The translations under genes were made by a program, and so were the position numbers. Of a stretch of DNA of 64,000 nucleotides, positions 10,770 to 28,292 are shown in pieces (positions within the stretch are counted from its first letter, which is position 1; each line of letters begins with the position of its first letter). The stretch lies in the sequence record OR413585.1. One strand, given 5' to 3'. The notes beneath the pieces are model-generated. The model was given only the letters and a program-made list of their open reading frames with translations. It made no database searches and was not told where the DNA came from.

Positions 10770-12182
10770 ATGCTATTTTACTCGAAGGAGTCGGCACTGC
10801 TTGTATACGACCAAGTCAATCGGGATAACCCTGATTTAGTTATTAAGCTGACGCCGGCTATCGCTGCTTTAACCAGTGGCCCAACCTCAGTTACGTTAAA
10901 CCAACGTAACACCAAAGCTGTTTTCACCGGGTATCCAGGGACAGGTGTACAAGGTAATGTTACCGTGTACTACGACCGGATTAACCTGGCCACCTTATTT
11001 AATTTTGTGCCGACTGTGGCTATCAAAGACACAGTCTTAACGGTACGAGACGCGTTACCTGCAATAAACGACGCATTAGGACTTACATTAGTTGCTTCTG
11101 ATTTGCAGTCACCTGACGCAAGTTTACCTAAACCGAGCGTTTCGCCGCAGACGTTGAAATTAAATATCTCAGGTAATTGCCCTGCGTTTACAGGCAGCTT
11201 AACGATACGTTATACCGTCCCGAGCGGTGCAATTTACCCCGATTCTGGACCTGGCCCTAAAACGTTGCTGCAAGGTAACACTATTGCGGGTTATTTCGGA
11301 ACAACCACAACTGCAGAGTTGTTTACACACTCTCAACTTCTTAATGCCACTATATCGGCCGGTGCGTTACCACCGGTACATTCTGGTGCCGAAGGTTGGT
11401 ACAAGTTCTTTTACCAGGGTAGGGTTATTTACTTCCCGATTAGTCCTGTCGCTAGCTCCATCTCCTGGAATACGTTATATACAAACGGACTCGTTTACGG
11501 AACAGACGATAATGGTAAATACCCTGCAGCGACGCCCGTTAACCAGGGACGCATCATTAGCTTTACAGGCGCAGACAACAAAAGGTTTTACTTCCGCGTT
11601 CGTCTACCTAGTGCTGGGAAAGACCCATACGTCAGCGGCACCCCAACGGCCGCTGAGTTAGCAGGTAGTGAGTTTGAGATGTTCAACTTTCTGTATAATG
11701 GAACGTGGGACAAACCGATTAACAGTTACTGGACGCTGTTCTGTTTATTGAAAGATACACTGAAGACCAACGTCGCCCATCATCGCATGGCGACGTTGTC
11801 TGGAGCAAGTTGGACAAACTTAGAAAAATCATCGAGTGCGGGCAACTACTACTGGTTCCCGGTGCTGGAGTTGGTGGATAAGTCCACAGTTACCTTGGGT
11901 TTAGAAGATATCCACGGTACGGCAGATTACAGTCTCCAACCGTGCAGCGTGTCCGCAGAAAACACATTTAGTCTCAAGCCGTTAGTGCTCGGTAATCCGG
12001 ATACTACCGATTTCGAACCGGTAGTTGTTACTTCAGAAAACAGTTTCGCACTGCATCCGCCTGCTTTAATGCTGCCGAAGACAGTCGACTTCCAACCTAT
12101 TGCGGCTACCGCTGAAATGTATACGCCCCCTGACAAGACAACGTTAACGTCTCTTAACGGTGAACTGGACGGCTTTAAGTAG
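10770..12182 (+). CDS. putative virion structural protein, type B (family A N-domain + GPGP domain + NGELDGF tail)
   Basis: VYYDRINL N-domain; SGPGPKTL..G..AGYFG; ends LNGELDGFK. Confidence 0.75.
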   Translation: MLFYSKESALLVYDQVNRDNPDLVIKLTPAIAALTSGPTSVTLNQRNTKAVFTGYPGTGVQGNVTVYYDRINLATLFNFVPTVAIKDTVLTVRDALPAINDALGLTLVASDLQSPDASLPKPSVSPQTLKLNISGNCPAFTGSLTIRYTVPSGAIYPDSGPGPKTLLQGNTIAGYFGTTTTAELFTHSQLLNATISAGALPPVHSGAEGWYKFFYQGRVIYFPISPVASSISWNTLYTNGLVYGTDDNGKYPAATPVNQGRIISFTGADNKRFYFRVRLPSAGKDPYVSGTPTAAELAGSEFEMFNFLYNGTWDKPINSYWTLFCLLKDTLKTNVAHHRMATLSGASWTNLEKSSSAGNYYWFPVLELVDKSTVTLGLEDIHGTADYSLQPCSVSAENTFSLKPLVLGNPDTTDFEPVVVTSENSFALHPPALMLPKTVDFQPIAATAEMYTPPDKTTLTSLNGELDGFK

Positions 12183-12193: not shown

Positions 12194-13192
12194 ATGTCTT
12201 TTACTTTGCGTTGGAAAAATCCAAACGTAATCTCTACGGTAGTAAAAATCTACCGTGATGTTAAAGATATCACACCAAGCGCTTTGCCTGAACCGATTGC
12301 AACGCTCTCAAACGGCGAGACAGAATGGCGTGATACCACCGCCACACCAGGCGCAACCTATTATTACCTTCTGACGGTAACCGCCAACGGTAAAACAGTG
12401 GCATCGTCTAGCCAGAAATATACCATTGAACTGAAGCGGGGAATCGGTCCAATGACTATTCTAAACGGTGACGACCGTTTAGGGTTTATGGGTGCGGTTC
12501 CTTACGACGAACAGTGGCTTCCGTCGCAAATGCCACCTGCATTTTTGGCGATGTTCCCTAACCTACTAACCGATCGTGTGGCGTTGTATAAATTTACCCG
12601 AAACGGGAAGATCTATTACATGCTATCTAGCACGTCGCAGTTCCCGAATACGCCTGTGGACTGGGCTTCCCTCTATCAAGCTGGTTTAGTCTACGGTACA
12701 GGCGATGCTGGCCCAGAGAACGGCCATGGAACGCTACCGGCCACTCCACAAGACGCTAAGATAGTCCACAGAGGGGATACGTACATTATGCGTCTTCCTC
12801 GCGGCCTGACGACGTCTAGCGAGTCTCCTGCGTATCCTTTCGTGGCTGACTACAATGGGAAAACCCACGATGAAATCGCTTCTCTAACCAACCCGTGCGA
12901 GTATAACGATTTACTTTACACGATGGTTAACGAGGTGCCGAAGAAACAACGTTGGGCTAACTGGGCAACAATCGGTTATACTTATCTGGGACAGGGTACT
13001 TTGGGAACCTTGGCACAGTATTTCGGCGGTGGTGTTCTCTGTATGGAACACGACACCGCGGAAGACCGTGTGCTCCATCGTGGTATTTTTAACAATGCCG
13101 GTGGAACACCCGTATCCACGATTCAGCGTATAAACTATTTATCACCCACCACGAAAGGGCGCTACTACCCTATCTTTGAACTGGTCGAGTAA
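12194..13192 (+). CDS. putative virion protein, type C1 (Fn3/Ig-like N-domain + GPGP-type domain)
   Basis: FTLRW..KIYRD..GETEWRD..TYYY resembles Fn3; GLVYGT motif shared with type B. Confidence 0.7.
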   Translation: MSFTLRWKNPNVISTVVKIYRDVKDITPSALPEPIATLSNGETEWRDTTATPGATYYYLLTVTANGKTVASSSQKYTIELKRGIGPMTILNGDDRLGFMGAVPYDEQWLPSQMPPAFLAMFPNLLTDRVALYKFTRNGKIYYMLSSTSQFPNTPVDWASLYQAGLVYGTGDAGPENGHGTLPATPQDAKIVHRGDTYIMRLPRGLTTSSESPAYPFVADYNGKTHDEIASLTNPCEYNDLLYTMVNEVPKKQRWANWATIGYTYLGQGTLGTLAQYFGGGVLCMEHDTAEDRVLHRGIFNNAGGTPVSTIQRINYLSPTTKGRYYPIFELVE

Positions 13193-13201
13193 GGGGCAGT
13201 C

Positions 13202-14125
13202 ATGACTATACGGTTAAGCTGGCCGTCCCAAGCCAGCAAAGGTCTTACCGCGATTGAAATCTACCGCAAGGAAGGATGGAACGCAACAATCGACGTTTAC
13301 AACCCAGGCACACCCCACGCCACCTTATCCGGTAGCGCGGTAGAGTTCGTAGATAATATCGATACCCTGACGAAGAATACAACTTATCGTTACTGGGTAG
13401 CTGCTGTGAAAGATAATGAACGACTTATCGGCAATCCGATTACGCAAGGGTTCTATCCGGACACTGGACCGGGGCCACAAACTATTTTGCGTGGCGATTG
13501 GGCGTCAGGCTATTTCGGTACGGTATCTAATACCGAGTTCTTTAATACTGCCGAGTTAAAACTCATGTTAACCGCGCAGCAGGGAAACATGTTTACTTAC
13601 GACCCTCAGGAATGGCACAAGTTTATTTTCCGTGGGCGAATTGTCTTCTTCCCAGCGACGATGCATTCGAAAAGCAACTCGGTACAAATGGCGTATCAGT
13701 ACGGCATGATGTACGGGACCGATGATGTCGGAAGTATTGTTCCGCAGGGAGCCACGGCGACTAAACAAGATTGTAAGGTCACGAAGGATGGTCGTACGTA
13801 CCGTATCCGATTACCTTACGCAGTCCCGTACGACGCGGCACTCTCAGGACAGGATTACAACAACGGTGAATGGCGAAACACAATGGGCCGTTTGTATCCT
13901 GTCGGTGCACAGTACGCAGCCCTCGGTCTTGGTGCGATTGACTCACTTGAAAGACAAGGCGCGACTGCGCAGCCGAATGAGTCAGGTGCCGCTGTATTAG
14001 CTCCTTTGTGGAGCAACAACATATTCGCTTATGCGTATGGCACCGTGCCTATGGGGATTAGTAACACCGCAGGTGTCGGGAACTCGGCCACGATATTCTT
14101 TGCTTTTGAATTAGTCTTACCGTAA
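13202..14125 (+). CDS. putative virion protein, type C2 (Fn3-like + GPGP domain)
   Basis: TGPGPQTILRGDWASGYFG; paralog of 16648..17550. Confidence 0.7.
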   Translation: MTIRLSWPSQASKGLTAIEIYRKEGWNATIDVYNPGTPHATLSGSAVEFVDNIDTLTKNTTYRYWVAAVKDNERLIGNPITQGFYPDTGPGPQTILRGDWASGYFGTVSNTEFFNTAELKLMLTAQQGNMFTYDPQEWHKFIFRGRIVFFPATMHSKSNSVQMAYQYGMMYGTDDVGSIVPQGATATKQDCKVTKDGRTYRIRLPYAVPYDAALSGQDYNNGEWRNTMGRLYPVGAQYAALGLGAIDSLERQGATAQPNESGAAVLAPLWSNNIFAYAYGTVPMGISNTAGVGNSATIFFAFELVLP

Positions 14126-14138
14126 TGGAGTAAATACC

Positions 14139-15557
14139 ATGGGGTTGTATACAGAACCTTCAATGGAACTGCTCTGCCAACAAATTGTGCGTGACAATCC
14201 CGGTTTAGCAGGAAAAATCACCCCTGACTCCATTGGGGTCAGGGGTGTTCCTGTTGCGAAAAACGTTAACGGACGAAACACTCAGATTACGTTGGTAGGA
14301 AAACCCGGTAAAGGATTTGCTGGGGAAATAACGGTATATTACGACCGGTTGAATCTGGCCAGTCTATTTAAGTCTGGCCCGAATATGGTGAGTATTCCAC
14401 GTAGCGCACAAACCCATGCGGAAGCGTTACCGGCGTTCAATGAATTGAACGGGTTGAACTTAACCGCGAGTGACATCACCAGTCCAAACGTTGCATTAAT
14501 GAAATACGCTACGCCGGAAACTGTAACTCTGACGGCGCACGCTAACTCCTTGTGTTATACCGGGTCATGCAAGATGACCTATGTTTACGAACCGATTGCG
14601 ATGTATCCGAAGTCGGGTCCTGGGCCAAAAGGATTAATGGCCGGTAATGAGTTATACGGATTCTTTGGGCTGGTAAGCGCGGAAGAGTTATTCACATCTG
14701 ATGAAATGGTGTATGCCCTCTATAACGGCACCAACTGGCCTAACCGCTACGCTATCAAGTGGCTCAAATTCTTTCTGAATGGGGCGGTAGTGTTTGTTCC
14801 GACCCGTGCGATTTGCAACGTTACCTGGGCAGACCTGTACAACAAGGGTGCAATATTTGATTCCGGAGACGCAGGACCTCGCCCGAAGTCGACTTACACA
14901 CCTGTCGATGTTGAACAGTTGAAATACATGGTAAAACGGGATGATGAAGGAACGCATTATTTCAGAATGTCTATCCCGTATTACACCGAGAACGCCGCCG
15001 CGCCTGATTGGAGTAAACCGCCGTCAATCACCTCTATCCTGTCACTGACCAGCAAATTGGGGTCGGTGAACGTATATGGGGAGTGGGGAACTCTTAGCAC
15101 GACTGATGCTAACTTCCTGGATTACGTGTGGTTACGACACCAGTTCGGTGCCGACCAAGCGTATTACCAGTCTATCAGTGGGAGCTATCGTTCATACACC
15201 TACATCTACACCTCTTCTGGCTTTTGGCCAATCTTGGAGATGTTTGATGTTGCCAATGAACCTGTGCCGTTGATTGACGAAGGTGCAGAATTAACATGGG
15301 CACCGTCCGTGGTTACTCTGACGGACATCGACCAAAACGAATCGCTTCGTGTGGTGCCGATTACGGAAACCTCCGCTACAGCGAATCCACGTCCTCTGCT
15401 TGCCACGACGGACAATGATGAACGTGCATATTCCGTCGCGGTAACAGGCATGGCTACCGTTAAGATTAGACCGATTATTCTCACGACTGACCAAATCGCC
15501 CAACCTTCAAAAATTACTCTGGGCGATACTAACGGTGAGTTGGATGGATTCCAATAA
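14139..15557 (+). CDS. putative virion structural protein, type B
   Basis: Paralog of 10770..12182; SGPGPKGL; ends TNGELDGFQ. Confidence 0.75.
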   Translation: MGLYTEPSMELLCQQIVRDNPGLAGKITPDSIGVRGVPVAKNVNGRNTQITLVGKPGKGFAGEITVYYDRLNLASLFKSGPNMVSIPRSAQTHAEALPAFNELNGLNLTASDITSPNVALMKYATPETVTLTAHANSLCYTGSCKMTYVYEPIAMYPKSGPGPKGLMAGNELYGFFGLVSAEELFTSDEMVYALYNGTNWPNRYAIKWLKFFLNGAVVFVPTRAICNVTWADLYNKGAIFDSGDAGPRPKSTYTPVDVEQLKYMVKRDDEGTHYFRMSIPYYTENAAAPDWSKPPSITSILSLTSKLGSVNVYGEWGTLSTTDANFLDYVWLRHQFGADQAYYQSISGSYRSYTYIYTSSGFWPILEMFDVANEPVPLIDEGAELTWAPSVVTLTDIDQNESLRVVPITETSATANPRPLLATTDNDERAYSVAVTGMATVKIRPIILTTDQIAQPSKITLGDTNGELDGFQ

Positions 15558-15569
15558 GAGGTAACGACA

Positions 15570-16644
15570 ATGGCTTTTACAATTCGTTGGACGAACAATA
15601 ACCCTGGGGCTTCGACCGTGAAGCTGTACCGCGACACCAAACCTCTGGAGCGTACGGCATTACCTGAACCTCTGGCAACGTTCACTAACGGGGAAACTGA
15701 GTATACTGACCGAACAGCGATACTGGGGACAACGTATTACTACATGACCACCGTGACAGTGGGAAGCCGGACACTGTTCAGTCCGCAGAAATCAATTCTG
15801 ATTCAGAACCGTCGCGGTATCGGCATCGTGGCTCCACAGTACGGTGATGACCGCTTTGCGTATTACGGGTATGTGGCGTACGGTGAATTGCCTAGCGCGG
15901 CTGATTATCCGCCAGGGTTTGTGGCCCTTTCTGGATTTGACCCAACTGTTAAGCCGGGCTTGATTAAGTTCCAGCTAGACGGTAAAATTCTGTATCTGTT
16001 TAGTGGTCTTCGTGTGAACGGCAACACGCTGTATAGCCGTGATGCGATTTATAACGCGGGGCTTGTGTACGGTGTTGATGGATTTGGTCCTGATAACGGA
16101 CGTGGTGATTTGGTGGGTGTTGACCAGAGTGGGTTGTTTGAATGGCAAGGCGACACCTGATGGATTTGGTCCTGATAACGGACGTGGTGATTTGGTGGGT
16201 GTTGACCAGAGTGGGTTGTTTGAATGGCAAGGCGACACCTATCGGATGCGATTGCTGCGCGGTTTAACCGACGGGGACGAACCGACAGTAATGACGTTGG
16301 ATGAATCGTTACGAAACGCAGACCATGATGACTTGGAATATGGTCGCTGCGAATATAACGACTTTGTTTATCCGTTCGGAGATTGTATCCCTAACAAACA
16401 AATGCTCCCTAACTGGACTAATATCAGTCCAGCGTCCATTTATGGGAGCGGTAGCGCTTACCAAGGCAAAGGTTTCTTGTGCCAAGAACGTGATCCTGAA
16501 TCGGGATTAGTTCTGGTTCGTGGGTCTGCGCCTATCGATTCAAGCATAGTCAATACGTCGAAACGTAACCTCTCCCAAGTTACGTTAATTGACAGTGCTG
16601 AGAAGGTCGGTTTGTACGCATTCGTTATCGAGTTAGTGGAGTAA
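15570..16644 (+). pseudogene. type C1 virion gene split by an 82-bp tandem duplication (or an assembly artefact)
   Basis: 15570..16160 and the 3' part of 16039..16644 together match 12194..13192; removing 82 bp gives a 330-aa ORF. Confidence 0.8.
16077..16240 (+). repeat. perfect 82-bp direct tandem duplication
   Basis: GATGGATTTGGTCC...GGCGACACCT at 16077-16158 and 16159-16240. Confidence 0.95.
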
Positions 16645-16647
16645 AAC

Positions 16648-17550
16648 ATGTCGATTATCTTAAACTGGAAACAACAGCCAGGTCAGACTTTAGATTCCAT
16701 TGAAATCTATCGTTACGTTAACCCTAGACAAAGTGTTAGCCCAGTAGCACCGGGGGAACCCATTGTAACACTACCAGGTAACACAACGACGTACGAGGAC
16801 AAGACCACCGAAGCGTATAAAACGTATCAATATCGCATCGTGGCGGTAAAGGGCACTGAAAAGGTTATGGGGCTGCCGATTGTACAGGGCGACTTTCCAA
16901 TGACAGGACCCGGCCCACAGGAACTTATTCGTGGCGACTGGCATCGTGGCTACTTTGGCACACTGACAAACGAAGAATTTATTCTTAACCATGCCGAGCT
17001 GAATGGTTTAATTGGCTTTAATGCCTGGAACCAAGCTCCAACATTGTTCCATAAATTCGTTTTCAAAGGACGCATTCTGTTCATTCCTGACACGGTGACC
17101 TGTTTAGGGACGTCGTGGAACGAACAATACCAGCAAGGTCTGGCCTGGGGAACAGATGACTACGGTTTCCCGCCACGGGGCGTCGCTACCACTAACCAGC
17201 GTCGGACATTTAATAAAGACGGTTACGAGTATGTGGTACGTTTGCCTCGACTCGGAGACTACAGTTATGGGCACAGCACCTACCTAAACAGCGGTGGTTA
17301 TTTTCAAGACGGCGAGTGGCACAACACGTTCGCAAGCTTGTTCCGGTACGCGGGCGTCGTAAGACGTTTTGGCGACTTACCGATGCGCTCCGGCGGTAGT
17401 CCAACCGATTCAACCGCAACATTGTTTGCCAACGGTTATGACAACGCCACCCCGTGGTATTATCGCGCCACTTATCCAGACTCACCATCGTACATCTCTT
17501 CGAACAGTAGCGCGTCGGTAGTCCACGTTATCGAATTGGTTCTTAGCTAA
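16648..17550 (+). CDS. putative virion protein, type C2
   Basis: TGPGPQELIRGDWHRGYFG; Fn3-like N-terminus. Confidence 0.7.
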   Translation: MSIILNWKQQPGQTLDSIEIYRYVNPRQSVSPVAPGEPIVTLPGNTTTYEDKTTEAYKTYQYRIVAVKGTEKVMGLPIVQGDFPMTGPGPQELIRGDWHRGYFGTLTNEEFILNHAELNGLIGFNAWNQAPTLFHKFVFKGRILFIPDTVTCLGTSWNEQYQQGLAWGTDDYGFPPRGVATTNQRRTFNKDGYEYVVRLPRLGDYSYGHSTYLNSGGYFQDGEWHNTFASLFRYAGVVRRFGDLPMRSGGSPTDSTATLFANGYDNATPWYYRATYPDSPSYISSNSSASVVHVIELVLS

Positions 17551-17561: not shown

Positions 17562-17837
17562 ATGGGGTTTTACTCATCCACTGCACTTGAGCTATTGTGT
17601 CGGCTCATTCAGCGGGATAATCCCCAACACGCAGGTCGAATCAGCGCAGATTCAATTGGGGAGTGTACGATCTATTACGATGAGTCGTTAAACAGTAACA
17701 CAGTGGCCGATGTTACCACCGCATCCAATTCGTTCGCTAATAAAGCGTACGGCCGCGTGGTTATCCAAACTGACGTCGAAGCAGCTGGAGTTAAAGGGAT
17801 AGCGTACTTCACCATAACAGCTAAAAATAGGCCCTGA
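17562..17837 (+). pseudogene. internally deleted chimeric remnant of array genes
   Basis: N-terminus resembles 14139; C-terminus resembles the end of 9892; a 1-nt shift near the end reads into the terminator. Confidence 0.7.
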
Positions 17838-17868: not shown

Positions 17869-19188
17869 ATGATCAACTATAACAAACCTGTCATGCAGCT
17901 GGTTTGGGATCAGATTAATCGTGATAACCCGCAGCTCAAGAAACCACTCAACGCAACCAACGTGGCGTTATTACAAGGTCCTTTAACCAATGCCTTGCGC
18001 GATGGCCGCAACAGCCGTATAGTGGTAAACGGATTACAGGGTGGTGGTTACAGCGGTAAGATGGACATCTACTACGACCGCTTAAACCTTTCGCAGTATT
18101 TTAAAGGCGTCAGCGTACCGGTTAAAGTACCATATCGGGCGACGTCCTACCGCGACATCATCGACCGGATTTCCGCAGCTTGTGGGTTGGTGCTTACTGC
18201 TGACGATTTAACGTATCCCGACAGCCAGTTTGCAATGATCACCGTGGCAACGGGCGATCGGACGGTGGCGATTAAATCGGATAACCCCGCATTCACGGGT
18301 CACATTCCTATTAGCTTTATTCGTGAAGAGCCCAGCTTTGCCGACTTGTACCACACCACCGAAACCGGAGCTTGGGAACCCATGGATGTTTACAGCACGG
18401 TCTATCGACTCGACTGGAGCATGTACACCCAACAGATAATCAATATCCCAATGGGTACCCCGTTGCGACTAAACAGTAACTCGTACATGAACCAGTTCAT
18501 CGCTGCGCTGTCGGCATGGTCGGGCATCCCGTTCACTATCGGCAACGCTGCTACTGATAACCCGTATGACCTCTATGGGTACGTCGCTACACGCAATAAC
18601 AACCCAGGCTTAGACCCTGATATGCGTGGGGAGTACAATTACTGCGTGAAGTTGACGCCACCTGAGGATATGGGTAATCTCCGCCGTCCGTTTTTCTTGC
18701 ACTTTGGTCCGAAAAATAACGTGGCCTATTTAGCGCAGGAAGAGGACGTCGAACGTTATGCGCGTTACATGGGGTTCCGGGAAACCAGCTCAAATACGAT
18801 GAGCATCACGTTATATCAAAACGAGTACGTGTTGACCCGGGCGGAAGCGCCTGAAACGAGGGATGATTTATCGGGTTCCCCGTATGGCCTTCAATACTGT
18901 ACCGGGAGTATTCGACGGCTGATGCAACACGCGTTTCCGACCGAAGAGATGTTCCAAGAAAGTATTGCTAACCGGCGGCGGGTACTGTACCACACTGCTT
19001 ACACCACCACGACATCAGCTGTTACTTACCCGGGACTAAACCGTAACGGATACCAATCCAAACAAGTGTCGAGCAATTACTCGAATTACTGTAACTATTT
19101 CATCTATTACGACCCAAGCAAAGGTGGCTATATGGTCTACAGTCCATATAGCAAAACCGCCCCGGTCCCTTGGTATCCACCGCTATAG
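17869..19188 (+). CDS. putative virion protein (family A N-domain, distinct C-domain)
   Basis: RNSRIVV..MDIYYDRLNL; C-terminal YSPYSKTAP..W shared with 19203. Confidence 0.7.
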   Translation: MINYNKPVMQLVWDQINRDNPQLKKPLNATNVALLQGPLTNALRDGRNSRIVVNGLQGGGYSGKMDIYYDRLNLSQYFKGVSVPVKVPYRATSYRDIIDRISAACGLVLTADDLTYPDSQFAMITVATGDRTVAIKSDNPAFTGHIPISFIREEPSFADLYHTTETGAWEPMDVYSTVYRLDWSMYTQQIINIPMGTPLRLNSNSYMNQFIAALSAWSGIPFTIGNAATDNPYDLYGYVATRNNNPGLDPDMRGEYNYCVKLTPPEDMGNLRRPFFLHFGPKNNVAYLAQEEDVERYARYMGFRETSSNTMSITLYQNEYVLTRAEAPETRDDLSGSPYGLQYCTGSIRRLMQHAFPTEEMFQESIANRRRVLYHTAYTTTTSAVTYPGLNRNGYQSKQVSSNYSNYCNYFIYYDPSKGGYMVYSPYSKTAPVPWYPPL

Positions 19189-19202: not shown

Positions 19203-21380
19203 ATGTCCTACACTCCTGATTTAGTGGCGACCGTGATTCGGTCGCTCAACCGTAAAAACGCGGTCGCCAAAGCAGTAGACCCCGCTAACGTACGCCTGGT
19301 GTCCGTGGCGCATCGTGACGAAAAAACCCTAGACGTCACACTGACAGGGGGTCCGGGGTATTCGAATTACGGTCAAATTACGGCCCAGGTCACGAAGCAA
19401 AATATTGCTGATTATTTCGCTAAGGTTAAGTTGGATGCCATTCCCACTTGTGCATCCATTCACGAACTGTTGCCGCATTTAGACACTTTACTGGGGATTA
19501 CCTTTTTAACCGACGACTTTGAAGACCTGCCTATCACTTGGACAAACAATGCTGCGCGTATCACATTCCAGGCGAAACAGACAAGTCTTATCTGGTACGG
19601 CAGCCAAACGCTAGATGTGATAAACGGTGACGTGGATATCAACACTGTCTACACTGTTACCAATATCATTCTCACGCTAAAGGCTGCGAATAAACAGCAG
19701 TGGATTAACTTCTACTCTAATGCAACCAAACGGATCGTGGATCTTGATAAAGTCGATGTCAGCGCCCCGATGTCCCCGGAGGATATAGGCCAAACCTCTG
19801 CGTATAACAGCGTCGTAGCTTTGACCGCTAGACCGGGGAGCGGGATGTTTGGAACGAAGTATGTGTTCTTCTCACGCAACAAACTCGAGACATATGCAGG
19901 CAAAACCACATACGTCCCGGATGATTTCACCGGTAGCCTGCACGATGCTCTGGCCATCGAGACACTCGGCATTCGGAGCGTTTTTGATGTAAACGAAATT
20001 GCTCCTGTAGAGAACCTGGTAGGCGAGTGGCCGAGACAAGTGCAATTGACACCCGTAGAGGGTTCGTACAAAGTCATGGGCAGCGCCACGTTGAATGTGG
20101 CACGCTATCAAGATAACGAGCAAACCCTTAACCTGAACTACACAACTACGTCGCAACTTTCGGACAGCTACTGGGCCACAACGTTGACCAACCATGCGGC
20201 GTGCGGGCGTTTGTTTGTTAACGTGACCGTAGATGCGGGGGCTTTCGTTTATCGCGACAGCAACCTGAAACCGACGTTCGTTATCGACGAATTGCCGCAA
20301 ATTGGCGAGGTGGTTTGGAACTTCGTTAACCGGGGAACCATTCTTGGTCGTGGTGGTTCGGGTATGGTCTACTCTATGCCTGCGAACACATCAGCGGACG
20401 GAGCTGACGCAATCCACATTAGCGATACCTTCCGTGGCAAAGTCACCATCGAAAACTACGGCACCATCGCCGGAGGTGGGGGTGGGGGCGACTACTATGC
20501 GTTTAGCACCACCAAGATCGGTGGAGCTGGTGGTGCGCCTCTCGGGCCAGGCGCGGCGGTGCCCAGCGGCACCAATAACCGTAACGGCTTAGCTGGGTCC
20601 CGTGACAAAGGCGGTGCTACCCAGTTAGTCGTCGCACAATTTACCGGCTACCAGAGTCGCTACTATGGCGGTCCGGGTGGGGATTGGGGCCAGCCGGGAC
20701 GATATACGGCGTTCGAGCAATGGAACACCCCGGCTACCGGCTCGCCGGTCTATGTCTACGGTCGTGAAGACGGGATGTCATGGACTCGCCCTGGGATGGC
20801 AGGCGAAGCCGTCGGTGGGAATAAAAGTATCGTCAACTGGGTATCCGTCGGAACGGTGAAACCGAATGTCACCGACGAGTACCAAGAGTTCCTCGACTAC
20901 CTCGCAGATTTAGATGCCAACCGATTGGCCAGTGCGGATGGGATAGATAAAGTCACCGACCCAACCAAACCTGTAGTTGTGGAGTTCTTAGGTACTATTA
21001 TTTCAGGTACGCTGTTCAAAAAGCAAAACATACCCGGCGGTTTGGTGGGAACACCATACGGCGATGCTGTAGCCAATTTACCGGCCACCACATTGTTTGG
21101 TATCATGGCACACTGTGTATCGGAGTTTGATATTGTGCACGACACTTGGCGTTACAACCGTGCGGTAATGTTCACCCTAAAACCCGCGCCTACCGGGGCG
21201 ATTGGCCTCGCTGTGGAACGCAACCGGGTGAGATCGGCTACCAGTAGTACACCGGTGGAGAGGTTCTATGTCGATCGCTTCGTGTATTACGATGCGTATC
21301 TCGGTAAAATGATGGAATGTAATCCGTATACCAAATCTGCCCCTAAAACGTGGGTGCGGCCAACGATACCGTTATCGTAA
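19203..21380 (+). CDS. putative receptor-binding virion protein with a T-even gp38-like glycine-rich adhesin domain
   Basis: Two family A-like N-domains, then GTILGRGG..GTIAGGGGGG..GGAGGAPLG..GGPGGDWG..AGEAVGG..W motifs. Confidence 0.65.
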   Translation: MSYTPDLVATVIRSLNRKNAVAKAVDPANVRLVSVAHRDEKTLDVTLTGGPGYSNYGQITAQVTKQNIADYFAKVKLDAIPTCASIHELLPHLDTLLGITFLTDDFEDLPITWTNNAARITFQAKQTSLIWYGSQTLDVINGDVDINTVYTVTNIILTLKAANKQQWINFYSNATKRIVDLDKVDVSAPMSPEDIGQTSAYNSVVALTARPGSGMFGTKYVFFSRNKLETYAGKTTYVPDDFTGSLHDALAIETLGIRSVFDVNEIAPVENLVGEWPRQVQLTPVEGSYKVMGSATLNVARYQDNEQTLNLNYTTTSQLSDSYWATTLTNHAACGRLFVNVTVDAGAFVYRDSNLKPTFVIDELPQIGEVVWNFVNRGTILGRGGSGMVYSMPANTSADGADAIHISDTFRGKVTIENYGTIAGGGGGGDYYAFSTTKIGGAGGAPLGPGAAVPSGTNNRNGLAGSRDKGGATQLVVAQFTGYQSRYYGGPGGDWGQPGRYTAFEQWNTPATGSPVYVYGREDGMSWTRPGMAGEAVGGNKSIVNWVSVGTVKPNVTDEYQEFLDYLADLDANRLASADGIDKVTDPTKPVVVEFLGTIISGTLFKKQNIPGGLVGTPYGDAVANLPATTLFGIMAHCVSEFDIVHDTWRYNRAVMFTLKPAPTGAIGLAVERNRVRSATSSTPVERFYVDRFVYYDAYLGKMMECNPYTKSAPKTWVRPTIPLS

Positions 21381-21424
21381 TTTAACGAGGAACTTGACGG
21401 GTTTAAAGCCTGAAGATAATCCAT

Positions 21425-21458
21425 GCCCTCTTCCCCACGGGGAAGAGGCTTTCTTTTT
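21425..21458 (+). terminator. intrinsic terminator
   Basis: CCTCTTCCC-CACG-GGGAAGAGG plus T tract. Confidence 0.8.
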
Positions 21459-21485
21459 ATGACCCTATCAACTCAGGAGGTTATC

Positions 21486-22076
21486 GTGGTCGATCGTTGG
21501 AGTAAAGAGGGCATTATTCGTGCCAAAGTAAACATCGAAGCCGGTTACGTTAATAACCCGAAAGATTTGGGCAAAGCAACGAACCGCGGTGTCACCGAAC
21601 TCACTGCGCGCGAATATGGCTATAAAGGGGATATGCGTGACCTGAGCTTAGAAATCGCGTTAGACATTTACAACAAGCTCTGGTGGCAGCGGATGCGTTT
21701 AGACCAGATTATGAAAATGAATGTCCTGCTAGCTGACCGAATGTTTGATTTCGGCATTAACGCAGGACGCGGTAACTGTATCAAGTCCCTGCAACGTATT
21801 CTGAACGTATTAAACCGTCAGGGTAAACTATACGATGATATCGATGCCGATGGTGGTATCGGGCCACGTACGTTAACAGCGTTAGAAGGCTTCATCAAAG
21901 CCCGTGGGGAAGAGGGCCTGAATCGACTGATGTTCGCTTTAACCTGTCATCAGGTTGCGTATTACACGGAAATCAGTGAAGGGCGTGAGGATAACGAAGA
22001 GTTTACTTACGGCTGGTATGGCCGCGTCTATCAGGAAATGCCAGACTACGTGGCTAAGTTGGGGATGTGCAAATGA
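21486..22076 (+). CDS. glycoside hydrolase family 108 N-acetylmuramidase with C-terminal peptidoglycan-binding domain (endolysin-like)
   Basis: EAGYVNNPKDLGKATNRGVT catalytic motif; FDFGINAG; DGGIGPRT; GGAGG RBS before GTG 21486 (the track start at 21423 lies in the terminator). Confidence 0.85.
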   Translation: MVDRWSKEGIIRAKVNIEAGYVNNPKDLGKATNRGVTELTAREYGYKGDMRDLSLEIALDIYNKLWWQRMRLDQIMKMNVLLADRMFDFGINAGRGNCIKSLQRILNVLNRQGKLYDDIDADGGIGPRTLTALEGFIKARGEEGLNRLMFALTCHQVAYYTEISEGREDNEEFTYGWYGRVYQEMPDYVAKLGMCK

Positions 22077-22174
22077 AACAGAATTGGTTTGCTGCCTTAA
22101 TGAAAGCTATCTGGCGCGCCCTTGTTTTTGCCGCAAGGAGAAAACGTAATGACCCACCGTCCAACTCCGCCTAA
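22073..22174 (+). CDS. 33-aa amphipathic basic micro-ORF (MKQNWFAALMKAIWRALVFAARRKRNDPPSNSA)
   Basis: ATGA overlap with the endolysin stop; translated by hand. Confidence 0.4.
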   Translation: MKQNWFAALMKAIWRALVFAARRKRNDPPSNSA

Positions 22175-22301
22175 GTTCCCCGAAGTACAAACCGTTCCGG
22201 AAACGTATTACGATTCTGGGTTCTTCAAACTATTACGCGCGATCTTCTGTCGGAGGGTAAAGCCATGCAATACGACAACGACGACTGGCCGAAAGGCTTA
22301 A
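22149..22301 (+). CDS. 50-aa micro-ORF
   Basis: AGGAG RBS at 22136-22140; translated by hand. Confidence 0.45.
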   Translation: MTHRPTPPKFPEVQTVPETYYDSGFFKLLRAIFCRRVKPCNTTTTTGRKA

Positions 22302-22357
22302 TGCCCATTTTACTGGGATTAATGGTCCTCACGATGCTCGTGCGTTATATGACGTGA
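22265..22357 (+). CDS. 30-aa single-TM micro-ORF (MQYDNDDWPKGLMPILLGLMVLTMLVRYMT)
   Basis: GGAGG RBS; hydrophobic helix. Confidence 0.5.
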   Translation: MQYDNDDWPKGLMPILLGLMVLTMLVRYMT

Positions 22358-22364
22358 GGTCAGT

Positions 22365-23006
22365 ATGGAAGCACTTAAGTATACGTTGTTAGAGAAGCCG
22401 TGGTTTATCCTCACGGATGATTTCCATTTCGAGTTTACGTTGCGCAGCCTCTATCGTGAACAGACCGGAATGGATGCGATGGTAGCATTAGCAGGTGTGC
22501 ATCCGGATACCCCGTTATGGGTAACGGTACCGAGAGGATTTGTGACGGACCTGGCAAGCATTCCAGAAGCGTTACGTCCTATCCTGCATCCGGATGGGCC
22601 TTGGGCTGCTGCCGCTTGTGTGCATGATTTGTTTTACCAGAAACGTTCATCGGTAGGCTTTTACCCTGACACTGTCGAAGGTAATCTATCTCGTGCATGT
22701 GACAAAACATTCGCTGATCTGATGTTCTTACGTATCATGGAGGCATTAGGCGTTGACACCTTTATTCGTAAGTCCTTCTACCATGCCGTTCACGAGTTTG
22801 GTTGGCCGTCCTATGTAGACGATAACTCTAAGGTGGTTTATAGCCGGCCGGTAGAAAAGACGTTGTCCTATAATCGCAACTACCTGTTCTTTAGAACGTC
22901 GCGTACGTTAGCGATTCCTGAACACGAACGTGTTGACATTACTAATGGGCAACCGGTAAACGTGCAGTATTTGAATATCAAACGTGCGTTCCTGACTACC
23001 CCTTAA
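22365..23006 (+). CDS. DUF1353-family protein
   Basis: VTVPRGFVTDLASIP...AAACVHDLFY signature. Confidence 0.8.
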   Translation: MEALKYTLLEKPWFILTDDFHFEFTLRSLYREQTGMDAMVALAGVHPDTPLWVTVPRGFVTDLASIPEALRPILHPDGPWAAAACVHDLFYQKRSSVGFYPDTVEGNLSRACDKTFADLMFLRIMEALGVDTFIRKSFYHAVHEFGWPSYVDDNSKVVYSRPVEKTLSYNRNYLFFRTSRTLAIPEHERVDITNGQPVNVQYLNIKRAFLTTP

Positions 23007-23015
23007 GGAGAGAAA

Positions 23016-23531
23016 ATGTTTCATCCGAATCCTGCCAACTTCGCGTTAAAAGAGTTGATGCCGCAGGAGTACATCGCGAAATACGGTGAAGGTGCTATTC
23101 GTTTCCTTAATCCGTTACTGCTAATCTCGCTCCAACAGATTCGTAATCGTTTTGGGCGGATGGTGATTTTAACCAGTTCCCAGCAACAGCGTAGTCTGCG
23201 TACCCTGCAGTTCTTTATTAATCAAGAGAAACCAAAGGGTGGAGATTGGCAAACTCGTGCAAACAAACTGTACGCCGAATCAGGCAGTATGCATAAATTC
23301 GGTAATGCGTTTGATGCAACAATGCTTGATACTCCGTTGCAGAAAGTACACGACTATATTGCCGCGAACCCTAACGAGTTTCCGTTTATTCACTTTATCG
23401 AGTGCGATATTACCTGGCTGCATGTTGACGTACGCAACCAGCCTGATATCACCTTCTGGTCACCGACACGTGGTACCGTTAAAGTGGTTAAGCAACAACC
23501 CATCGATTGGAGCAAGCTAGTTAAAATCTAA
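23016..23531 (+). CDS. peptidase M15-like Zn peptidase (peptidoglycan-related)
   Basis: SMHKFGNAFD and WLHVD Zn-ligand motifs. Confidence 0.75.
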   Translation: MFHPNPANFALKELMPQEYIAKYGEGAIRFLNPLLLISLQQIRNRFGRMVILTSSQQQRSLRTLQFFINQEKPKGGDWQTRANKLYAESGSMHKFGNAFDATMLDTPLQKVHDYIAANPNEFPFIHFIECDITWLHVDVRNQPDITFWSPTRGTVKVVKQQPIDWSKLVKI

Positions 23532-23623
23532 GCCACTTTAATCAAAAGTAATATCATTTATCATTTGATACGTTTAATGCGCTTAGAGAGCGTTACAGAG
23601 CGTTTTAGAGGGTAAATAAAACC

Positions 23624-23654
23624 CTTACCCACTCCCCTTACGGGAGTGGGTAAG
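23624..23654. terminator. probable bidirectional terminator
   Basis: 13-bp stem CTTACCCACTCCC/GGGAGTGGGTAAG between convergent genes. Confidence 0.75.
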
Positions 23655-23656
23655 CA

Positions 23657-24148
23657 TTATTTATTTTCTTCTAACGGAACAATCGTAATCGGAGTAGGAA
23701 CTTCACCGATAAACCCGCTGCTGCAGCGAAAGAATGTCATCCCTTTACCTTCGCCGGTATACGGGTTCACATCCGAAAAAGAGTAAGTGGGGCTATCGTT
23801 TACGGTTTTATTAATACGGTAATAACGCTCACCTGTGGTGGTATTAACATTCCCGTCGATTTTGCCAATTGTATCTTTAAACATCATCGGTGACTCTAGT
23901 TTGCCACCGTCCCACGCTGCTACCCAGTTTGCACCCACATCCATTACTGTTACTGACCGCGGCATCATTTGTAGGTTGTCCAGTACCGGACGGTAGTCTA
24001 CAAACTTCTCCTGCGTCCCTATGCATGTATAAATCACCAAGTCGTGATTCTTTACTGGTGTGGCGCTAAATTGTCCTATGTTGCTTGGCGACTGAACACA
24101 ACCGGCCAACAGGTTTATAATCGCGAATACGATAAATAGACGTTTCAT
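23657..24148 (-). CDS. putative lipoprotein
   Basis: MKR + hydrophobic stretch + LAGC lipobox. Confidence 0.75.
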   Translation of the reverse strand: MKRLFIVFAIINLLAGCVQSPSNIGQFSATPVKNHDLVIYTCIGTQEKFVDYRPVLDNLQMMPRSVTVMDVGANWVAAWDGGKLESPMMFKDTIGKIDGNVNTTTGERYYRINKTVNDSPTYSFSDVNPYTGEGKGMTFFRCSSGFIGEVPTPITIVPLEENK

Positions 24149-24271
24149 AGAGTACCTTTCAGTGGTAAAAACTTTCTCGTTTAACAGCCAACTTTACTGT
24201 CATATTAAGCCCACTATGTTGTTTTTAGAACGATTTAGTATGCACCACAAACCTACTATAAGGAAACAACC

Positions 24272-24799
24272 ATGGCAGTCATCTCTGCAAAAGACCAACT
24301 CGTCGCGCTGTTTAATGCTGCAAACAGCGGACTGTCTAGTCCGTTAACTACTGCTGACGTTACATTCGGCGCTGTTGCTGACTATTCACCAGCAGATTCT
24401 GGAGACACTCGCAACTCCAAACTCACCATCACTGCCACCGCGGAATCCGCTAACTTTACGGGCGAGAAAGAGCTGCACTATACCCGCCTCGATTCATTGA
24501 ACATCATCGGTGCGAAAGCAGTTACCGCTGACCAGGCAGAATGGGATACCGATGAAGAAGTGCTTGCTTTTGTCAACGCAGATCTAATTGCCGCCGGTAA
24601 AACGGAAGATGCGTTTGCGTTGTCTGAACTCACCATTTCACGCGAAGACGGCGACAGTGGTGAGAAAATCATCACTGTTATGGTGAAAGAAGGCCACATT
24701 AAATACCAGCCTGCCAGCCTTGCAGTTTATACTGTAACGCAGCCAATCGTTAAAACTGACCTGAGCACCACCAACGGTGAACTGGACGGATTCGTTTAA
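24272..24799 (+). CDS. stand-alone family A N-domain virion protein with NGELDGF tail
   Basis: TRNSKLTITA..FTGEKELHYTRLD; ends TTNGELDGFV; AAGGA RBS. Confidence 0.75.
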   Translation: MAVISAKDQLVALFNAANSGLSSPLTTADVTFGAVADYSPADSGDTRNSKLTITATAESANFTGEKELHYTRLDSLNIIGAKAVTADQAEWDTDEEVLAFVNADLIAAGKTEDAFALSELTISREDGDSGEKIITVMVKEGHIKYQPASLAVYTVTQPIVKTDLSTTNGELDGFV

Positions 24800-24839
24800 C
24801 AAAACAACTTAGTAGTTTCTAAGAAATAAATAAAAGGTA

Positions 24840-24878
24840 CCTACCTCCCTTCGGGGAGGTAGGGCCTTTATTTTCTTT
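24840..24878. terminator. bidirectional terminator
   Basis: CCTACCTCCC-TTCG-GGGAGGTAGG flanked by A- and T-rich runs. Confidence 0.8.
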
Positions 24879-24880
24879 GC

Positions 24881-25552
24881 TTACATGCCGAGTGATTCGG
24901 ACAATGTTTTTAATCCAGTGTAATCGCGTTTTTCAGCTAACTCACGGATTTGGCGTTTGTTATCTGCCATTGCTGAGTGCAACACTTGGTCACGTGCAAC
25001 AATAGCGGCCAGCAACGCTTTACATTGGGCTACTGTAAACGGACTGTGCTTGGTATTCAGCGTATCGAGCCAGTATTCTGGTGCGGTATCTGCCTGAATG
25101 TATTGACCGAGGATGGTACGCGACGATTCATCGGCTTGAAAGTGACTACCTTCAAACTCGATATAACCATGGCGCTCATCTTCGTAGCGGTGGTCGAGTT
25201 CCAACAGCATCTTCTGCACGTCTTCGTAAATGTAACGTGCGGTAGATTTCAGATTCCCGCGAATTTCGTCGAGGTCAATCTCCAACACATTAGCAATAAA
25301 CTCTTTCGTGCGTTTCAATGTGAAGTTAGCTTCAATCTCCGACATCTCATACAGCTTCATGCGTGCCAGGGCTTCTTTATCAGACATCCCTTCGATGAGA
25401 TGGTAATGGAGTAATGCACAAAATCCGGTACGACCCTGATCCTGCGCACCGATTCGTTCCATGAAATTACCGTGACGATCAATCGGCAAATCACGCTGGA
25501 AATAACGGGCGCGGATCTCTTCGTTCGTTAAGCTTTTGTCAGTAACAGACAT
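24881..25552 (-). CDS. DUF4376-like (tail-fibre assembly-type) protein
   Basis: C-terminal GYIEFEGSHFQADESSR..WLDTLN..FTVAQCKALLAAI pattern. Confidence 0.6.
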   Translation of the reverse strand: MSVTDKSLTNEEIRARYFQRDLPIDRHGNFMERIGAQDQGRTGFCALLHYHLIEGMSDKEALARMKLYEMSEIEANFTLKRTKEFIANVLEIDLDEIRGNLKSTARYIYEDVQKMLLELDHRYEDERHGYIEFEGSHFQADESSRTILGQYIQADTAPEYWLDTLNTKHSPFTVAQCKALLAAIVARDQVLHSAMADNKRQIRELAEKRDYTGLKTLSESLGM

Positions 25553-26094
25553 TCGTCCTCCTCAATCAGGCCAAGTTCTAACAACAAACCGAAGTCCAGC
25601 ATCTGGAAGTCCTGATCGAGGTTACCGGCCCACAACACAGAAATGTTGTGTTGCTCTTCTTCTTCCAACTGCGGGAGCAGGTGTTCTTCGAAGATTTGAC
25701 GCTCTGTGTAATAAGCGTCAACCGGGTTATTGGAGCGTAAGTTACGAATACGCATCCGCGGGAATGACAAGCCCAATGCCACTAAACTTTCAGGACTGGC
25801 TTCATCGATAGAGTGACGTAGCAGTTCGATTTTGTGGCGTGGGTATGCAAGCAGTCGCTTCTCAAAGCCAGGGTTGCGCTTTTCGATTTCCGCGACAGAC
25901 TCGTGTCCTTTCTCAACGCAGTAGACCGGGATCATCACATTCAGCCCGTATTTAATCAACAGGCTTTGGATTTCATCAGTGAAGTCTTCCCCTGCCACAA
26001 TTGCGTGCACATTGTACAGCTTGCTTTTGCGCAGGAAGCGATCGACCAAGTGCAGCTTACGCTTCGTAAAATTGTGAATCAGTATTGACTTCAT
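25528..26094 (-). CDS. hypothetical protein in the rSAM cassette (start MKSIL)
   Basis: GGAG RBS upstream of ATG at 26094; overlaps both neighbours. Confidence 0.65.
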   Translation of the reverse strand: MKSILIHNFTKRKLHLVDRFLRKSKLYNVHAIVAGEDFTDEIQSLLIKYGLNVMIPVYCVEKGHESVAEIEKRNPGFEKRLLAYPRHKIELLRHSIDEASPESLVALGLSFPRMRIRNLRSNNPVDAYYTERQIFEEHLLPQLEEEEQHNISVLWAGNLDQDFQMLDFGLLLELGLIEEDECLLLTKA

Positions 26095-27385
26095 TCTGGG
26101 CTCCGTTTTGTAATTTTTCTGCTTCAGCACGTTGGCGTACACAACGTGAACAATAGCACATGGATTTATCGTGCAAATCTGATGCACGGGTCGTACCAGT
26201 TTTCTGATACCAATATTCCGCCGCCATCAACTTCGCAGTAGTCCAACCACACTGACGACGCTCGGCGTGATACGCTTTACGGTCTTCCAGTGTACCTTCA
26301 CCGTTTTCGTACGATGCTGCTGCGCAGCTACCGCAGCTGTGTTTCATCGGACACCCTAAACAGGTTTCTGGGTAGTTGGTGTACTGCGTTTGAATCTCTT
26401 CTAACAGCTTACCACCGTCCAGGCTCACAAACTCACGACCGACCAGTTCTGCTACAGCAGAGCGGGAAGTTACCGTGGACATGAAACGGTTACAACCGTA
26501 AATCTTGCGATCAAAGCCGAGACAGGTCATGTGCGTCAACGTACCGCAGTACGGTTTCAGGCGTTCTGGGTCGAGACGAACAGAGTCGTCATGTAAGAGT
26601 TTGTCACGCCAATCCGGGTCCCAAGTTGCCATAAAGTTCAGGCCATCCGGGATGATGTGCGTAATCGTGTTACGCGGGTTGGTGTGCAGACCCTTCTCAA
26701 TCCAGTAGTCCATCACGTCCATCATCTGGTTCGCGATATCCAACGCCATATGGCGCGGCAGGATATCTTCGTACGTTACGTTACCAGAGATGGTGCCACC
26801 GCCGGACATGTCAATTAACGATTTCATGCTGGCGGCATAGTGCGGCAATGTATCGATCGTAAACGTCGCCTTTACGCCCAGTTCAGCGATGCCAACACTC
26901 TTCAGATAATTGTAACCGCGTACCGCAGCTTCGTACGACCCTTCACGCGTCGTGGTAAAGATACGATATTTGTCATGGACTTCAGGTAAACCATCGATGG
27001 AGACCCCAATAGACAGTTTGTCTTTCCAGCGCTCGATAATTTCTTTGTTCAGCGGACGGTCCAGAAGCGTACCGTTCGTGGAGATACTGAACATATACGG
27101 GCGATTGTGTTCTGCGCATAACTTCTCTGCGGTTTCAAAGGCCGCCAAAAGAAGTTTAGGCTGCATGAACGGCTCACCACCGATGATATCGATGATGACT
27201 TCAACGTTCGGGATATCTTTATCACGCTCGAAACAAGCGTGGATAAAATCAATCACGTCTGCTACTTTGTTGTTACGCGGATATTTACGCTCGTAGCAGT
27301 ATTCGCAGTCCAGGTTACATGACAAGTTAGTCACAACCTGATACGTGCGTGGTGTGTACTGGATTTGCTGTTCGCTATTACTCAT
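26057..27385 (-). CDS. radical SAM/SPASM peptide maturase
   Basis: CNLDCEYC; IIGGEPF; ISTNGTLL; SIDG; SPASM cysteines YCG..C..GCNRF..CLGC..SCGSC..QC. Confidence 0.92.
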   Translation of the reverse strand: MSNSEQQIQYTPRTYQVVTNLSCNLDCEYCYERKYPRNNKVADVIDFIHACFERDKDIPNVEVIIDIIGGEPFMQPKLLLAAFETAEKLCAEHNRPYMFSISTNGTLLDRPLNKEIIERWKDKLSIGVSIDGLPEVHDKYRIFTTTREGSYEAAVRGYNYLKSVGIAELGVKATFTIDTLPHYAASMKSLIDMSGGGTISGNVTYEDILPRHMALDIANQMMDVMDYWIEKGLHTNPRNTITHIIPDGLNFMATWDPDWRDKLLHDDSVRLDPERLKPYCGTLTHMTCLGFDRKIYGCNRFMSTVTSRSAVAELVGREFVSLDGGKLLEEIQTQYTNYPETCLGCPMKHSCGSCAAASYENGEGTLEDRKAYHAERRQCGWTTAKLMAAEYWYQKTGTTRASDLHDKSMCYCSRCVRQRAEAEKLQNGAQNEVNTDSQFYEA

Positions 27386-28292
27386 TGTTCGCCGCCCGTT
27401 TACGCTTAGCAGAAATTACACGGTTGATGTAGTTATACGCATCAACGCCGATAGAACGCGCCAGGCGATTACAGCCGACTTCCAATATCTCTGGGGCGTT
27501 CTGAATTTGCTCCTGCGTACCGTCGGCGTTAAGCCACAGCACTTCACTGCACGTGTTGCACTCGGTATCGAACATTTTACTGATCGCAAGCCCACATTCA
27601 GAATCGTTCTGCATGTTAAGGCGTTCGATATTGTCGAGTATTTTCCAATACCCGTACATGAAGTTCATGACGTGGTCTGGCGATAACGGTTTCGGCATCA
27701 TCGCATCAAACAACAACGACACACCACCTGGACGGTAATGATAGATTGCTCGGTGCAGCTCGATGAAATCTTCGTACCAGCGTTTATCACCTAACTGGTC
27801 ACGCGTCATCACACCCCAGGTGTAATAGTTGTCCAGCTCGTACAGCACTTCCAGCGCTTCGTGATTACCACCGTTTACAAAGTTCATAAACGGACGTTCC
27901 GACTTCTTGTAGCCGTCAATGGACACAAAGATAAGGTCGAACTGTTTCAGCAACGGCAGATGTGATTTACGCATCTTTAAACCGTTGGTGTACATGTGAT
28001 GACGGAGGTTCGGATGAGACTCCTTCAACTCGTTCACGAAGTCTTCAATCTTACGCTGCGCTAACAGCGGCTCACCGCCCGTCCAATGAATCTCACCGAT
28101 ATCCGGATTCTTCTCTAAAATCGAGAGAATCTCTTCACGTTGAAACTCACGAGAAATATCTTCTCTATCCATGTAATAAGCCCCTCCACAGAAGCTACAG
28201 TCTAAGTTACACTTAGAAGTTGCGACAACCGACAGAATTGACGGTTTGTCGTACAGTTCAGACGAGATCCTGGATTCTACTTGATCTGTCAT
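27378..28292 (-). CDS. second radical SAM protein with a short C-terminal Cys region
   Basis: CNLDCSFC; WTGGEPL; YTNG; VSIDG; C-terminal CNTC..GC; GGAG RBS before ATG 28292. Confidence 0.88.
   Translation of the reverse strand: MTDQVESRISSELYDKPSILSVVATSKCNLDCSFCGGAYYMDREDISREFQREEILSILEKNPDIGEIHWTGGEPLLAQRKIEDFVNELKESHPNLRHHMYTNGLKMRKSHLPLLKQFDLIFVSIDGYKKSERPFMNFVNGGNHEALEVLYELDNYYTWGVMTRDQLGDKRWYEDFIELHRAIYHYRPGGVSLLFDAMMPKPLSPDHVMNFMYGYWKILDNIERLNMQNDSECGLAISKMFDTECNTCSEVLWLNADGTQEQIQNAPEILEVGCNRLARSIGVDAYNYINRVISAKRKRAANNE

Follow-up and report, generated by a model that had tools for sequence, protein, structure and literature searches.

A nonsense codon fixed across Seoulvirus jumbo phages most probably leaves the C-terminal tail of virion protein gp155 as an untranslated relic

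We analysed a 64,000-nucleotide stretch of sequence record OR413585.1 (the window), in which the gene starting at position 19203 on the + strand encodes an orthologue of SPN3US_0155 (gp155, AEP83988.1; 97% identity). According to our analysis, this gene most probably carries a nonsense truncation that has become fixed and behind which the former C-terminal tail persists as an untranslated relic, rather than a recoding signal. Over positions 19203-21500, the sequence matches that of Salmonella phage SPLA5c, a jumbo phage of the genus Seoulvirus, at 100% identity, and it displays 95-99% identity to 34 other records of SPN3US-like jumbo phages of this genus. The gene closes a long + strand array of paralogous virion genes and is followed by a hairpin terminator and then by an endolysin gene (Table 1). 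In SPN3US, gp155 is the same 725-residue product with the same stop, and the remnant is also present, although, unlike that of the window, it has also lost a conserved Phe.

The sequence-only reading had described a 725-residue frame closed by an in-frame TAA (21378-21380) and continuing in the same frame, and both the sequence and its translation confirm this. Behind the stop, whose TAA is followed by a T, lie ten sense codons encoding E-L-D-G-F among others, and then a TGA at 21411-21413. Transcription termination is placed as had been claimed, since a single terminator-like hairpin (21427-21448, followed by a T run) occurs only after this TGA. A six-frame scan of the 64 kb for E-[LIVM]-D-G-F yielded four matches, every one of them on the + strand and either at the end of a gene encoding a DUF7941 protein or shortly behind it; the three besides the remnant lie at the ends of the genes for the first and second triplet-head proteins and for the gp160 orthologue. 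The motif is therefore common to three other proteins, as had been noticed, although the assignment of all three to the array does not hold, the gp160 orthologue being encoded by a separate gene. By a rough estimate from residue frequencies, the chance of finding the five-residue core in frame within about 12 codons of a given stop is of the order of 1e-5.

In its ancestral order, the protein consists of an N-terminal DUF7941 domain, a Gp38-like glycine-rich domain, a C-terminal domain common to gp154, and the tail motif. DUF7941 (Pfam PF25613) is matched at residues 11-154 (83.1 bits against a cut-off of 27, E=3.1e-23) and Gp38 (PF05268) at residues 373-553 (65.8 bits against a cut-off of 25, E=6.6e-18; profile positions 61-214 of 218). 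The protein also matches phrog_2056, annotated "tail fiber protein; host specificity", in PHROGs (E=2.1e-19). The match to phrog_19313 covers profile positions 1-714 of 728 and leaves the last positions unmatched, so the family profile expects a few further C-terminal residues. The linker motif of the family, of the type L-x3-h-T-x-T/G-E-L-D/N-G-L/F, is absent from the translated product of the window and sits behind the stop.

The identical stop was present in 12 of the 12 Seoulvirus genomes aligned, which are independent isolates from different laboratories and countries, and all full-length members listed from the 345-member cluster at 90% identity comprise 725 residues. Hence a sequencing error is excluded and the stop predates the sampled genus. 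That the stop is a sequencing or assembly error in SPLA5c alone, one of the options left by the sequence-only reading, was a possibility a priori only, and a gene close by in SPLA5c does contain an unusual tandem duplication, with exact copies; with the stop in every aligned genome and 725-residue proteins from isolate assemblies, this explanation is refuted and its probability is practically nil. An exact-pattern scan of IMG/VR for further Seoulvirus copies returned SPN3US only.

Outside the genus, the frame is open. Gene 144 of Cronobacter phage CR5 (CR5_144) and gp145 of Erwinia phage Phobos, both at about 40% identity, read through the tail, as do the metagenomic relatives P0003 (82%, 738 residues), P0004 (77%, 735 residues), and P0025 (737 residues), and a domain-deleted metagenomic relative (P0005) also reads the tail without a stop. 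In an exhaustive protein search of cluster representatives, the frame was uninterrupted, with the tail at its end, in P0098 and P0101 to P0104. Since orthologues at 40-82% identity are open through the tail, the comparison indicates that the gp155 tail is ancestral and that the Seoulvirus stop is a derived nonsense mutation. Comparison with orthologues had been proposed as a check, and the finding of sense codons is the outcome that had been named as favouring a plain nonsense allele. Of the "recent nonsense mutation" suggested earlier, the nonsense part is borne out by these sense codons, whereas "recent" in the sense of strain-specific is not, the stop being older than the sampled genus. We also considered that the remnant had been copied by recombination from the 3' end of a neighbouring triplet-head paralogue, and rejected this origin because both flanks are colinear with the orthologous tail of L016, the nearest relative with a tail, and because the remnant is closest to orthologous rather than paralogous tails.

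The remnant appears to be decaying within the genus. In one of the 12 Seoulvirus genomes an 11-nucleotide deletion breaks its frame, in five the conserved Phe is replaced, and two genomes carry one extra stop each, one of these (Lh1B) being a low-quality record full of N. The remnant of the window ends two codons before the end of the closest intact tail. Zero synonymous changes were found in the remnant of the Seoulvirus alignment; diversity statistics on these 33 nucleotides are dominated by the one deletion and have little power. In the gene body of the same genomes, 93 variable codons differ by synonymous changes only and 44 change the residue, and insertions or deletions are absent; the body is under purifying selection.

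Stop-codon readthrough, programmed or at a low level, by which a minority of tailed gp155 in the virion could recruit a further subunit, was the other option of the sequence-only reading, and we regard it as very unlikely. Its appeal lies in a tail that is in frame and has an intact motif in the window, that resembles the nearest intact tail more than do 94.5% of the windows of this size in the gene, and that precedes the terminator, as well as in a second lineage with a stop directly before an intact tail. However, neither a leaky stop or context nor a suppressor tRNA was found in SPLA5c. ARAGORN detected no suppressor tRNA in 237.8 of the 239.1 kb of this genome, the remaining 1.3 kb lying within the tail-sheath gene; no Rfam family, of recoding or other RNA, gave a match at E<=1 in positions 21200-21600; and local folding near the stop revealed nothing strong besides the terminator. 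In both lineages, the stop is TAA followed by T. Poole, Brown and Tate are said to have reported in 1995 that this is the most efficient termination context in Escherichia coli, and to our knowledge it is the least leaky one in enterobacteria. Furthermore, the two lineages stop at different codons, so there is no conserved signal; relatives at 77-82% identity have no stop; and the deletion frameshift in one clade member, the loss of Phe in five, and the second stop in two would disable the extension where they occur. Nor is this a conserved stop followed by a constrained extension, given its absence from relatives at 40-82% identity, with the caveat of the close similarity of the remnant to the L016 tail that is weighed below. 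The sole tRNA gene of the phage found by ARAGORN is a tRNA-Trp(CCA), located at L023 13572-13647, in the part of the SPLA5c genome outside the window.

The A1 coat extension of Qbeta is the paradigm of programmed stop-codon readthrough in phages, and in the known phage cases the stop is leaky and the extension is conserved and required. Like such systems, the gp155 gene, which encodes a virion protein, has an in-frame stop with a further in-frame, coding-like stretch behind it; it differs in having a TAA followed by T, only ten codons that appear to be decaying, and relatives devoid of the stop.

The remnant might also be kept for a role at the DNA or RNA level, as part of the 3' end of the operon transcript, as a signal for the endolysin gene, or as a homology block for recombination of cassettes. 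The tail-coding DNA includes a core of about 20 nucleotides common to the paralogues, the array is clearly reshuffled between genomes, and the similarity to the nearest intact tail is high, all of which would fit such a role. We nevertheless deem it highly improbable, since one clade member dispenses with 11 nucleotides of the remnant, only the terminator folds well, no promoter-like site lies there, and about 20 nucleotides of imperfect identity are short for homologous recombination.

The loss of the tail is not confined to Seoulvirus. In two contigs from different samples (L020 and L021) of a sister lineage at about 77% identity, one in-frame stop at another codon precedes a fully intact tail, and no such stop is found in their near relatives L017, L018, and L022. 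The distant orthologue groups P0099, P0105, and P0106 end at the homologous point, with 17-23 nucleotides to the next gene and no remnant. An independent stop in a sister lineage and tail-less distant orthologues together indicate that tail loss recurs. Likewise, the paralogue gp154, whose C-terminal domain is the same, naturally terminates at the corresponding position; it lacks a tail, and its gene leaves no space for one. The tail is evidently a facultative element that was lost on several occasions, and a protein without it evidently works.

Whether truncation became fixed by selection is the only respect in which a variant of this explanation departs from it, namely, that removal of the docking motif was selected again and again, a stop being the cheapest way to make the subunit with the Gp38 domain a chain end, so that loss was adaptive rather than neutral. 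The at least two independent stops before the tail, the three further tail-less orthologue groups, the natively tail-less gp154 with the same C-terminal domain, and the fixation of the stop across the genus are consistent with adaptive loss, as is a locus (L027) with a tail-less pair beside a second pair, whose 735-residue long gene was not read to its C-terminus. However, the same pattern is expected if a dispensable tail is lost neutrally, as selection would remove stops further upstream; the numbers are small; and fixation could have occurred by hitch-hiking. On balance, adaptive loss appears possible but rather unlikely.

The locus just mentioned is a contig of Logan accession SRR1749770 and belongs to a distant relative; its positions 1676-8121 contain two successive pairs of gp154-like and gp155-like genes. 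The long gene of the first pair encodes 706 residues and is tail-less; that of the second was called at 735 residues and runs off the locus. A phage carrying tailed and tail-less gp155 at once would be informative.

What the tail does can be approached through its relatives. In the gp160 family (62 homologues), columns of the C-terminal motif rank with the most strongly conserved ones, and its E-L-D has an invariant Leu (L171). A similar motif directly follows the N-terminal domain in 23 aligned paralogues of about 275 residues, and when the gp160 family was compared with these paralogues by hhalign (probability 97.8%, E=7.5e-13), the tail columns fell on the linker behind the domain. Judged by this alignment, the DUF7941 linker motif and the G-E-L-D-G-F tails found in "paralog family B" of SPN3US are one and the same. 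An AlphaFold 2 model of the gp160 orthologue has a pLDDT (predicted local distance difference test) of 94, with the tail at about 88-91 and hence predicted to be ordered. The top match in the PDB for this model, which is of gp160 and not of gp155, is 9xqd_0, an outer peripheral baseplate chain of phiKZ (probability 1.00, template modeling scores 0.51/0.57, E=1.8e-3).

A preprint on phage Goslar (10.64898/2026.04.21.720040) describes DUF7941 proteins as highly abundant in virions. According to its predictions, protomers pair head to tail, the linker of one, alone or together with its C-terminal domain, docking on the N-terminal domain of the protomer that follows. The preprint shows filaments of purified Goslar gp22, fits the gp126-gp127 pair in the baseplate map of phiKZ, and reports that some Goslar members have domains of the host-recognition type after the DUF7941 module. 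Goslar gp22/gp23 and phiKZ gp126/gp127 (PDB 9xqd) resemble gp155 in their N-terminal DUF7941 and homologous linker or tail; in gp155, in contrast, the motif is situated at the extreme C-terminus, after the Gp38-like and C-terminal domains, and is cut off by the stop. The "docking tail" that was thought to be lost is thus confirmed as a conserved C-terminal tail cut by a nonsense codon, while docking itself is plausible through the homology to the linker and the proposal of the preprint. We give about even chances to the tail being the element by which one subunit holds the next. That tail-less gp155 can be held but cannot hold, and would so sit at a chain end, is a tentative suggestion to which we attach somewhat less than even probability.

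The fixed nonsense truncation that we favour can be pictured as follows. A single nonsense mutation in the ancestor of Seoulvirus would have closed the gp155 frame just before its last dozen codons, and since then the 725-residue, tail-less gp155, a genuine virion protein, would have been the one made. What lies behind the stop, namely the ten codons, the earlier spacer, and the initiation codon of the gene that used to follow, would be untranslated leftovers, which would have survived because decay is slow compared with the short time since the loss. The tail so lost would be a copy of the linker motif that follows the N-terminal DUF7941 domain in every other family member. According to the Goslar predictions and filament images and to the phiKZ baseplate map, this motif would let one protomer hold the N-terminal domain of the next; gp155, lacking it, may be held via its own N-terminal domain and hold no further subunit, as the end of a chain. 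A bolder possibility, which we consider improbable, is that the linker or tail is a modular tag for holding the next subunit which, in the subunit with the Gp38 domain, is repeatedly switched off by a stop just ahead of it, so that a subunit that extended the chain now ends it and the filament cloud is rewired, and that an intact remnant keeps the switch reversible or allows a trace of tailed product.

With regard to its place in the virion, SPN3US gp155 was detected at 70-80% sequence coverage (PMC10052503 Tables S2, S5, S6), and its normalised peptide-spectrum match ratio of tailless heads to wild type was 0.89, with the label "Head" (PMC10052503 Table S2). Paralog family B of SPN3US (gps 138-154, 160) is also labelled head (PMC10052503; PMC5694885), the levels of the DUF7941 family are unchanged in SPN3US tail-tube-mutant particles (PMC10052503), and gp160 is a high-abundance virion protein (PMC5694885). 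The earlier description of gp155 as an adhesin or receptor-binding protein therefore finds support in the above-threshold Pfam match to GP38, but not in the roughly equal amounts of gp155 in tailless heads (PMC10052503 Table S2), and the literature points away from a distal, receptor-binding role at a fibre tip. The likeness to Gp38, the tail-fibre adhesin of T-even phages (PF05268), concerns the glycine-rich central region and is a match at the level of the domain only, gp155 being about three times the size of Gp38; nothing points to gp155 capping a long tail fibre, and SPN3US gp155 was assigned to the head fraction. Mass spectrometry of SPN3US also differs from the Goslar and phiKZ placement in finding the family in tailless heads and not only at the baseplate. 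The head assignment in SPN3US and the peripheral baseplate placement in Goslar and phiKZ cannot both be the whole story.

Several points weigh against the truncation as we interpret it. The remnant is identical at 28/30 positions to the tail of L016, the closest tailed relative, compared with 78% for the gene body, and only 5.5% of the 30-nucleotide windows of the gene body are as similar to L016. This fits the young loss of a formerly highly constrained motif, but continuing constraint, through rare readthrough or a role at the DNA or RNA level, would also fit. The decay of the remnant is a matter of few events in 33 nucleotides, one of the genomes with an extra stop being the low-quality record, and the independent origin of two stops directly ahead of an intact tail might be a sign of selection favouring a product that mostly lacks the tail, rather than of neutral loss. 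The published spectra were searched with the annotated gp155 of 78.3 kDa, so a minor tailed form was not looked for. As for the mechanism, the predicted docking function derives from AlphaFold predictions and negative-stain images in a preprint on another phage, and a model anchored at the baseplate, as for Goslar and phiKZ, is at odds with the SPN3US mass spectrometry, in which gp155 and its paralogues go with the tailless heads.

The alignment of the window with L016, L017, and L022 extends over the tail, the spacer, and the start codon (ATG) of their next gene, beyond which the window changes abruptly to the terminator. Since homology ends right after this ATG, a rearrangement junction lies there. 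In CR5, Phobos, and the metagenomic relatives, a pair of genes for 438 and 735 residues stands before the three-gene triplets; in Seoulvirus, the gp154/gp155 pair stands after the triplets and ends the operon. The stop is not tied to this rearrangement, because the lineage of L020 and L021 retains the earlier order of genes. A 217-residue open reading frame that overlaps the terminator hairpin begins with the ATG at 21423, and the endolysin start in GenBank is 21459. Because the counterpart of this ATG in the relatives is the start codon of what was formerly the downstream gene, the ATG is probably a fossil and not the start of the endolysin.

Table 1. Features of the gp155 locus and of the surrounding array in the window
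Feature	Coordinates	Strand	Basis or remarks
Seven tandem DUF7941 paralogues, about 265-303 residues	4645..10722	+	Motif internal, directly after the N-terminal domain
First triplet-head protein, 470 residues, gp145 orthologue	10770..12182	+	DUF7941 N-terminal; tail motif at the extreme C-terminus
Second triplet-head protein, 472 residues, gp148-like	14139..15557	+	DUF7941; tail motif at the extreme C-terminus
gp154 orthologue, 439 residues, tail-less	17869..19188	+	DUF7941; phrog_6409 and phrog_19313 on the C-terminal part
gp155 orthologue, ancestral reading frame	19203..21413	+	One in-frame stop; translated product 725 residues; tail an untranslated remnant
Fossil spacer and start codon of the former downstream gene	21414..21426	+	Alignment with L016, L017, and L022
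Terminator-like hairpin (9 pairs, 6 G-C) and T run	21427..21458	+	Kept in 12 of 12 Seoulvirus genomes
Endolysin (Glyco_hydro_108 and PG_binding_3), present downstream neighbour	21459..22076	+	Pfam, GenBank annotation
gp160 orthologue, 175 residues	24272..24799	+	DUF7941 N-terminal domain, then directly the tail motif

Upstream of the gp154/gp155 pair, each triplet consists of a head protein of about 470-500 residues and partners of about 330 and about 300 residues. Compared with L001 and L005 to L009, the number and make-up of the triplets at 10770-17550 vary, with three in SPN3US, two plus fragments in SPLA5c and hence in the window, and a different combination in SPLA3; on this comparison, the triplet region is a recombining cassette array. 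The triplet partners (12194-13192, 13202-14125, 16042-16644, and 16648-17550) have a conserved C-terminal motif of their own, h-E-L-V/I-E/L-x, a second family-wide C-terminal tag. At 15570-16644 (+), the middle gene of the second triplet, which is of the SPN3US gp149/gp152 type and encodes about 330 residues there, is split into two overlapping open reading frames by an exact 82-nucleotide tandem duplication (two copies, 100% identical) that shifts the frame. GenBank lists two proteins for it, and the gene is whole in the other genomes that we looked at; the duplication may be real or an assembly artefact. The 91-residue open reading frame at 17562-17837 (+), for which the annotation reads "virion structural protein", is pieced together from DUF7941 fragments. 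Roughly the first 40 residues correspond, apart from an internal gap, to the N-terminus of a triplet-head protein, and roughly the last 50 to the C-terminal end of the paralogues of about 275 residues; the frame looks like a deletion remnant of array genes.

Downstream of the array, L017 18320-21395 was compared with 21459-25552 of the window; in L017, the block containing endolysin and DUF1353 lies on the other strand, and its order relative to the gp160 orthologue is changed as well. The region has therefore been inverted or rearranged between the window and this relative at 77% identity. Beside the virion array, two adjoining radical S-adenosylmethionine genes occupy 26057-28328 (-), a neighbourhood that is kept in SPN3US, CR5, and relatives.

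Annotators were thus right to end the gp155 gene at 725 residues, and the gene fails as a candidate for recoding. The conflict between the head assignment of the family by mass spectrometry in SPN3US and the baseplate model of Goslar and phiKZ deserves to be flagged. The recurrent loss of the tail offers a natural experiment for the very recent idea that the DUF7941 proteins of nucleus-forming jumbo phages chain head to tail via a linker. The motif can be located at the far C-terminus, behind large inserted domains, and it has been removed several times from the family member with a Gp38 domain, which provides structural biologists with a defined short peptide and with natural pairs of tailed and tail-less proteins.

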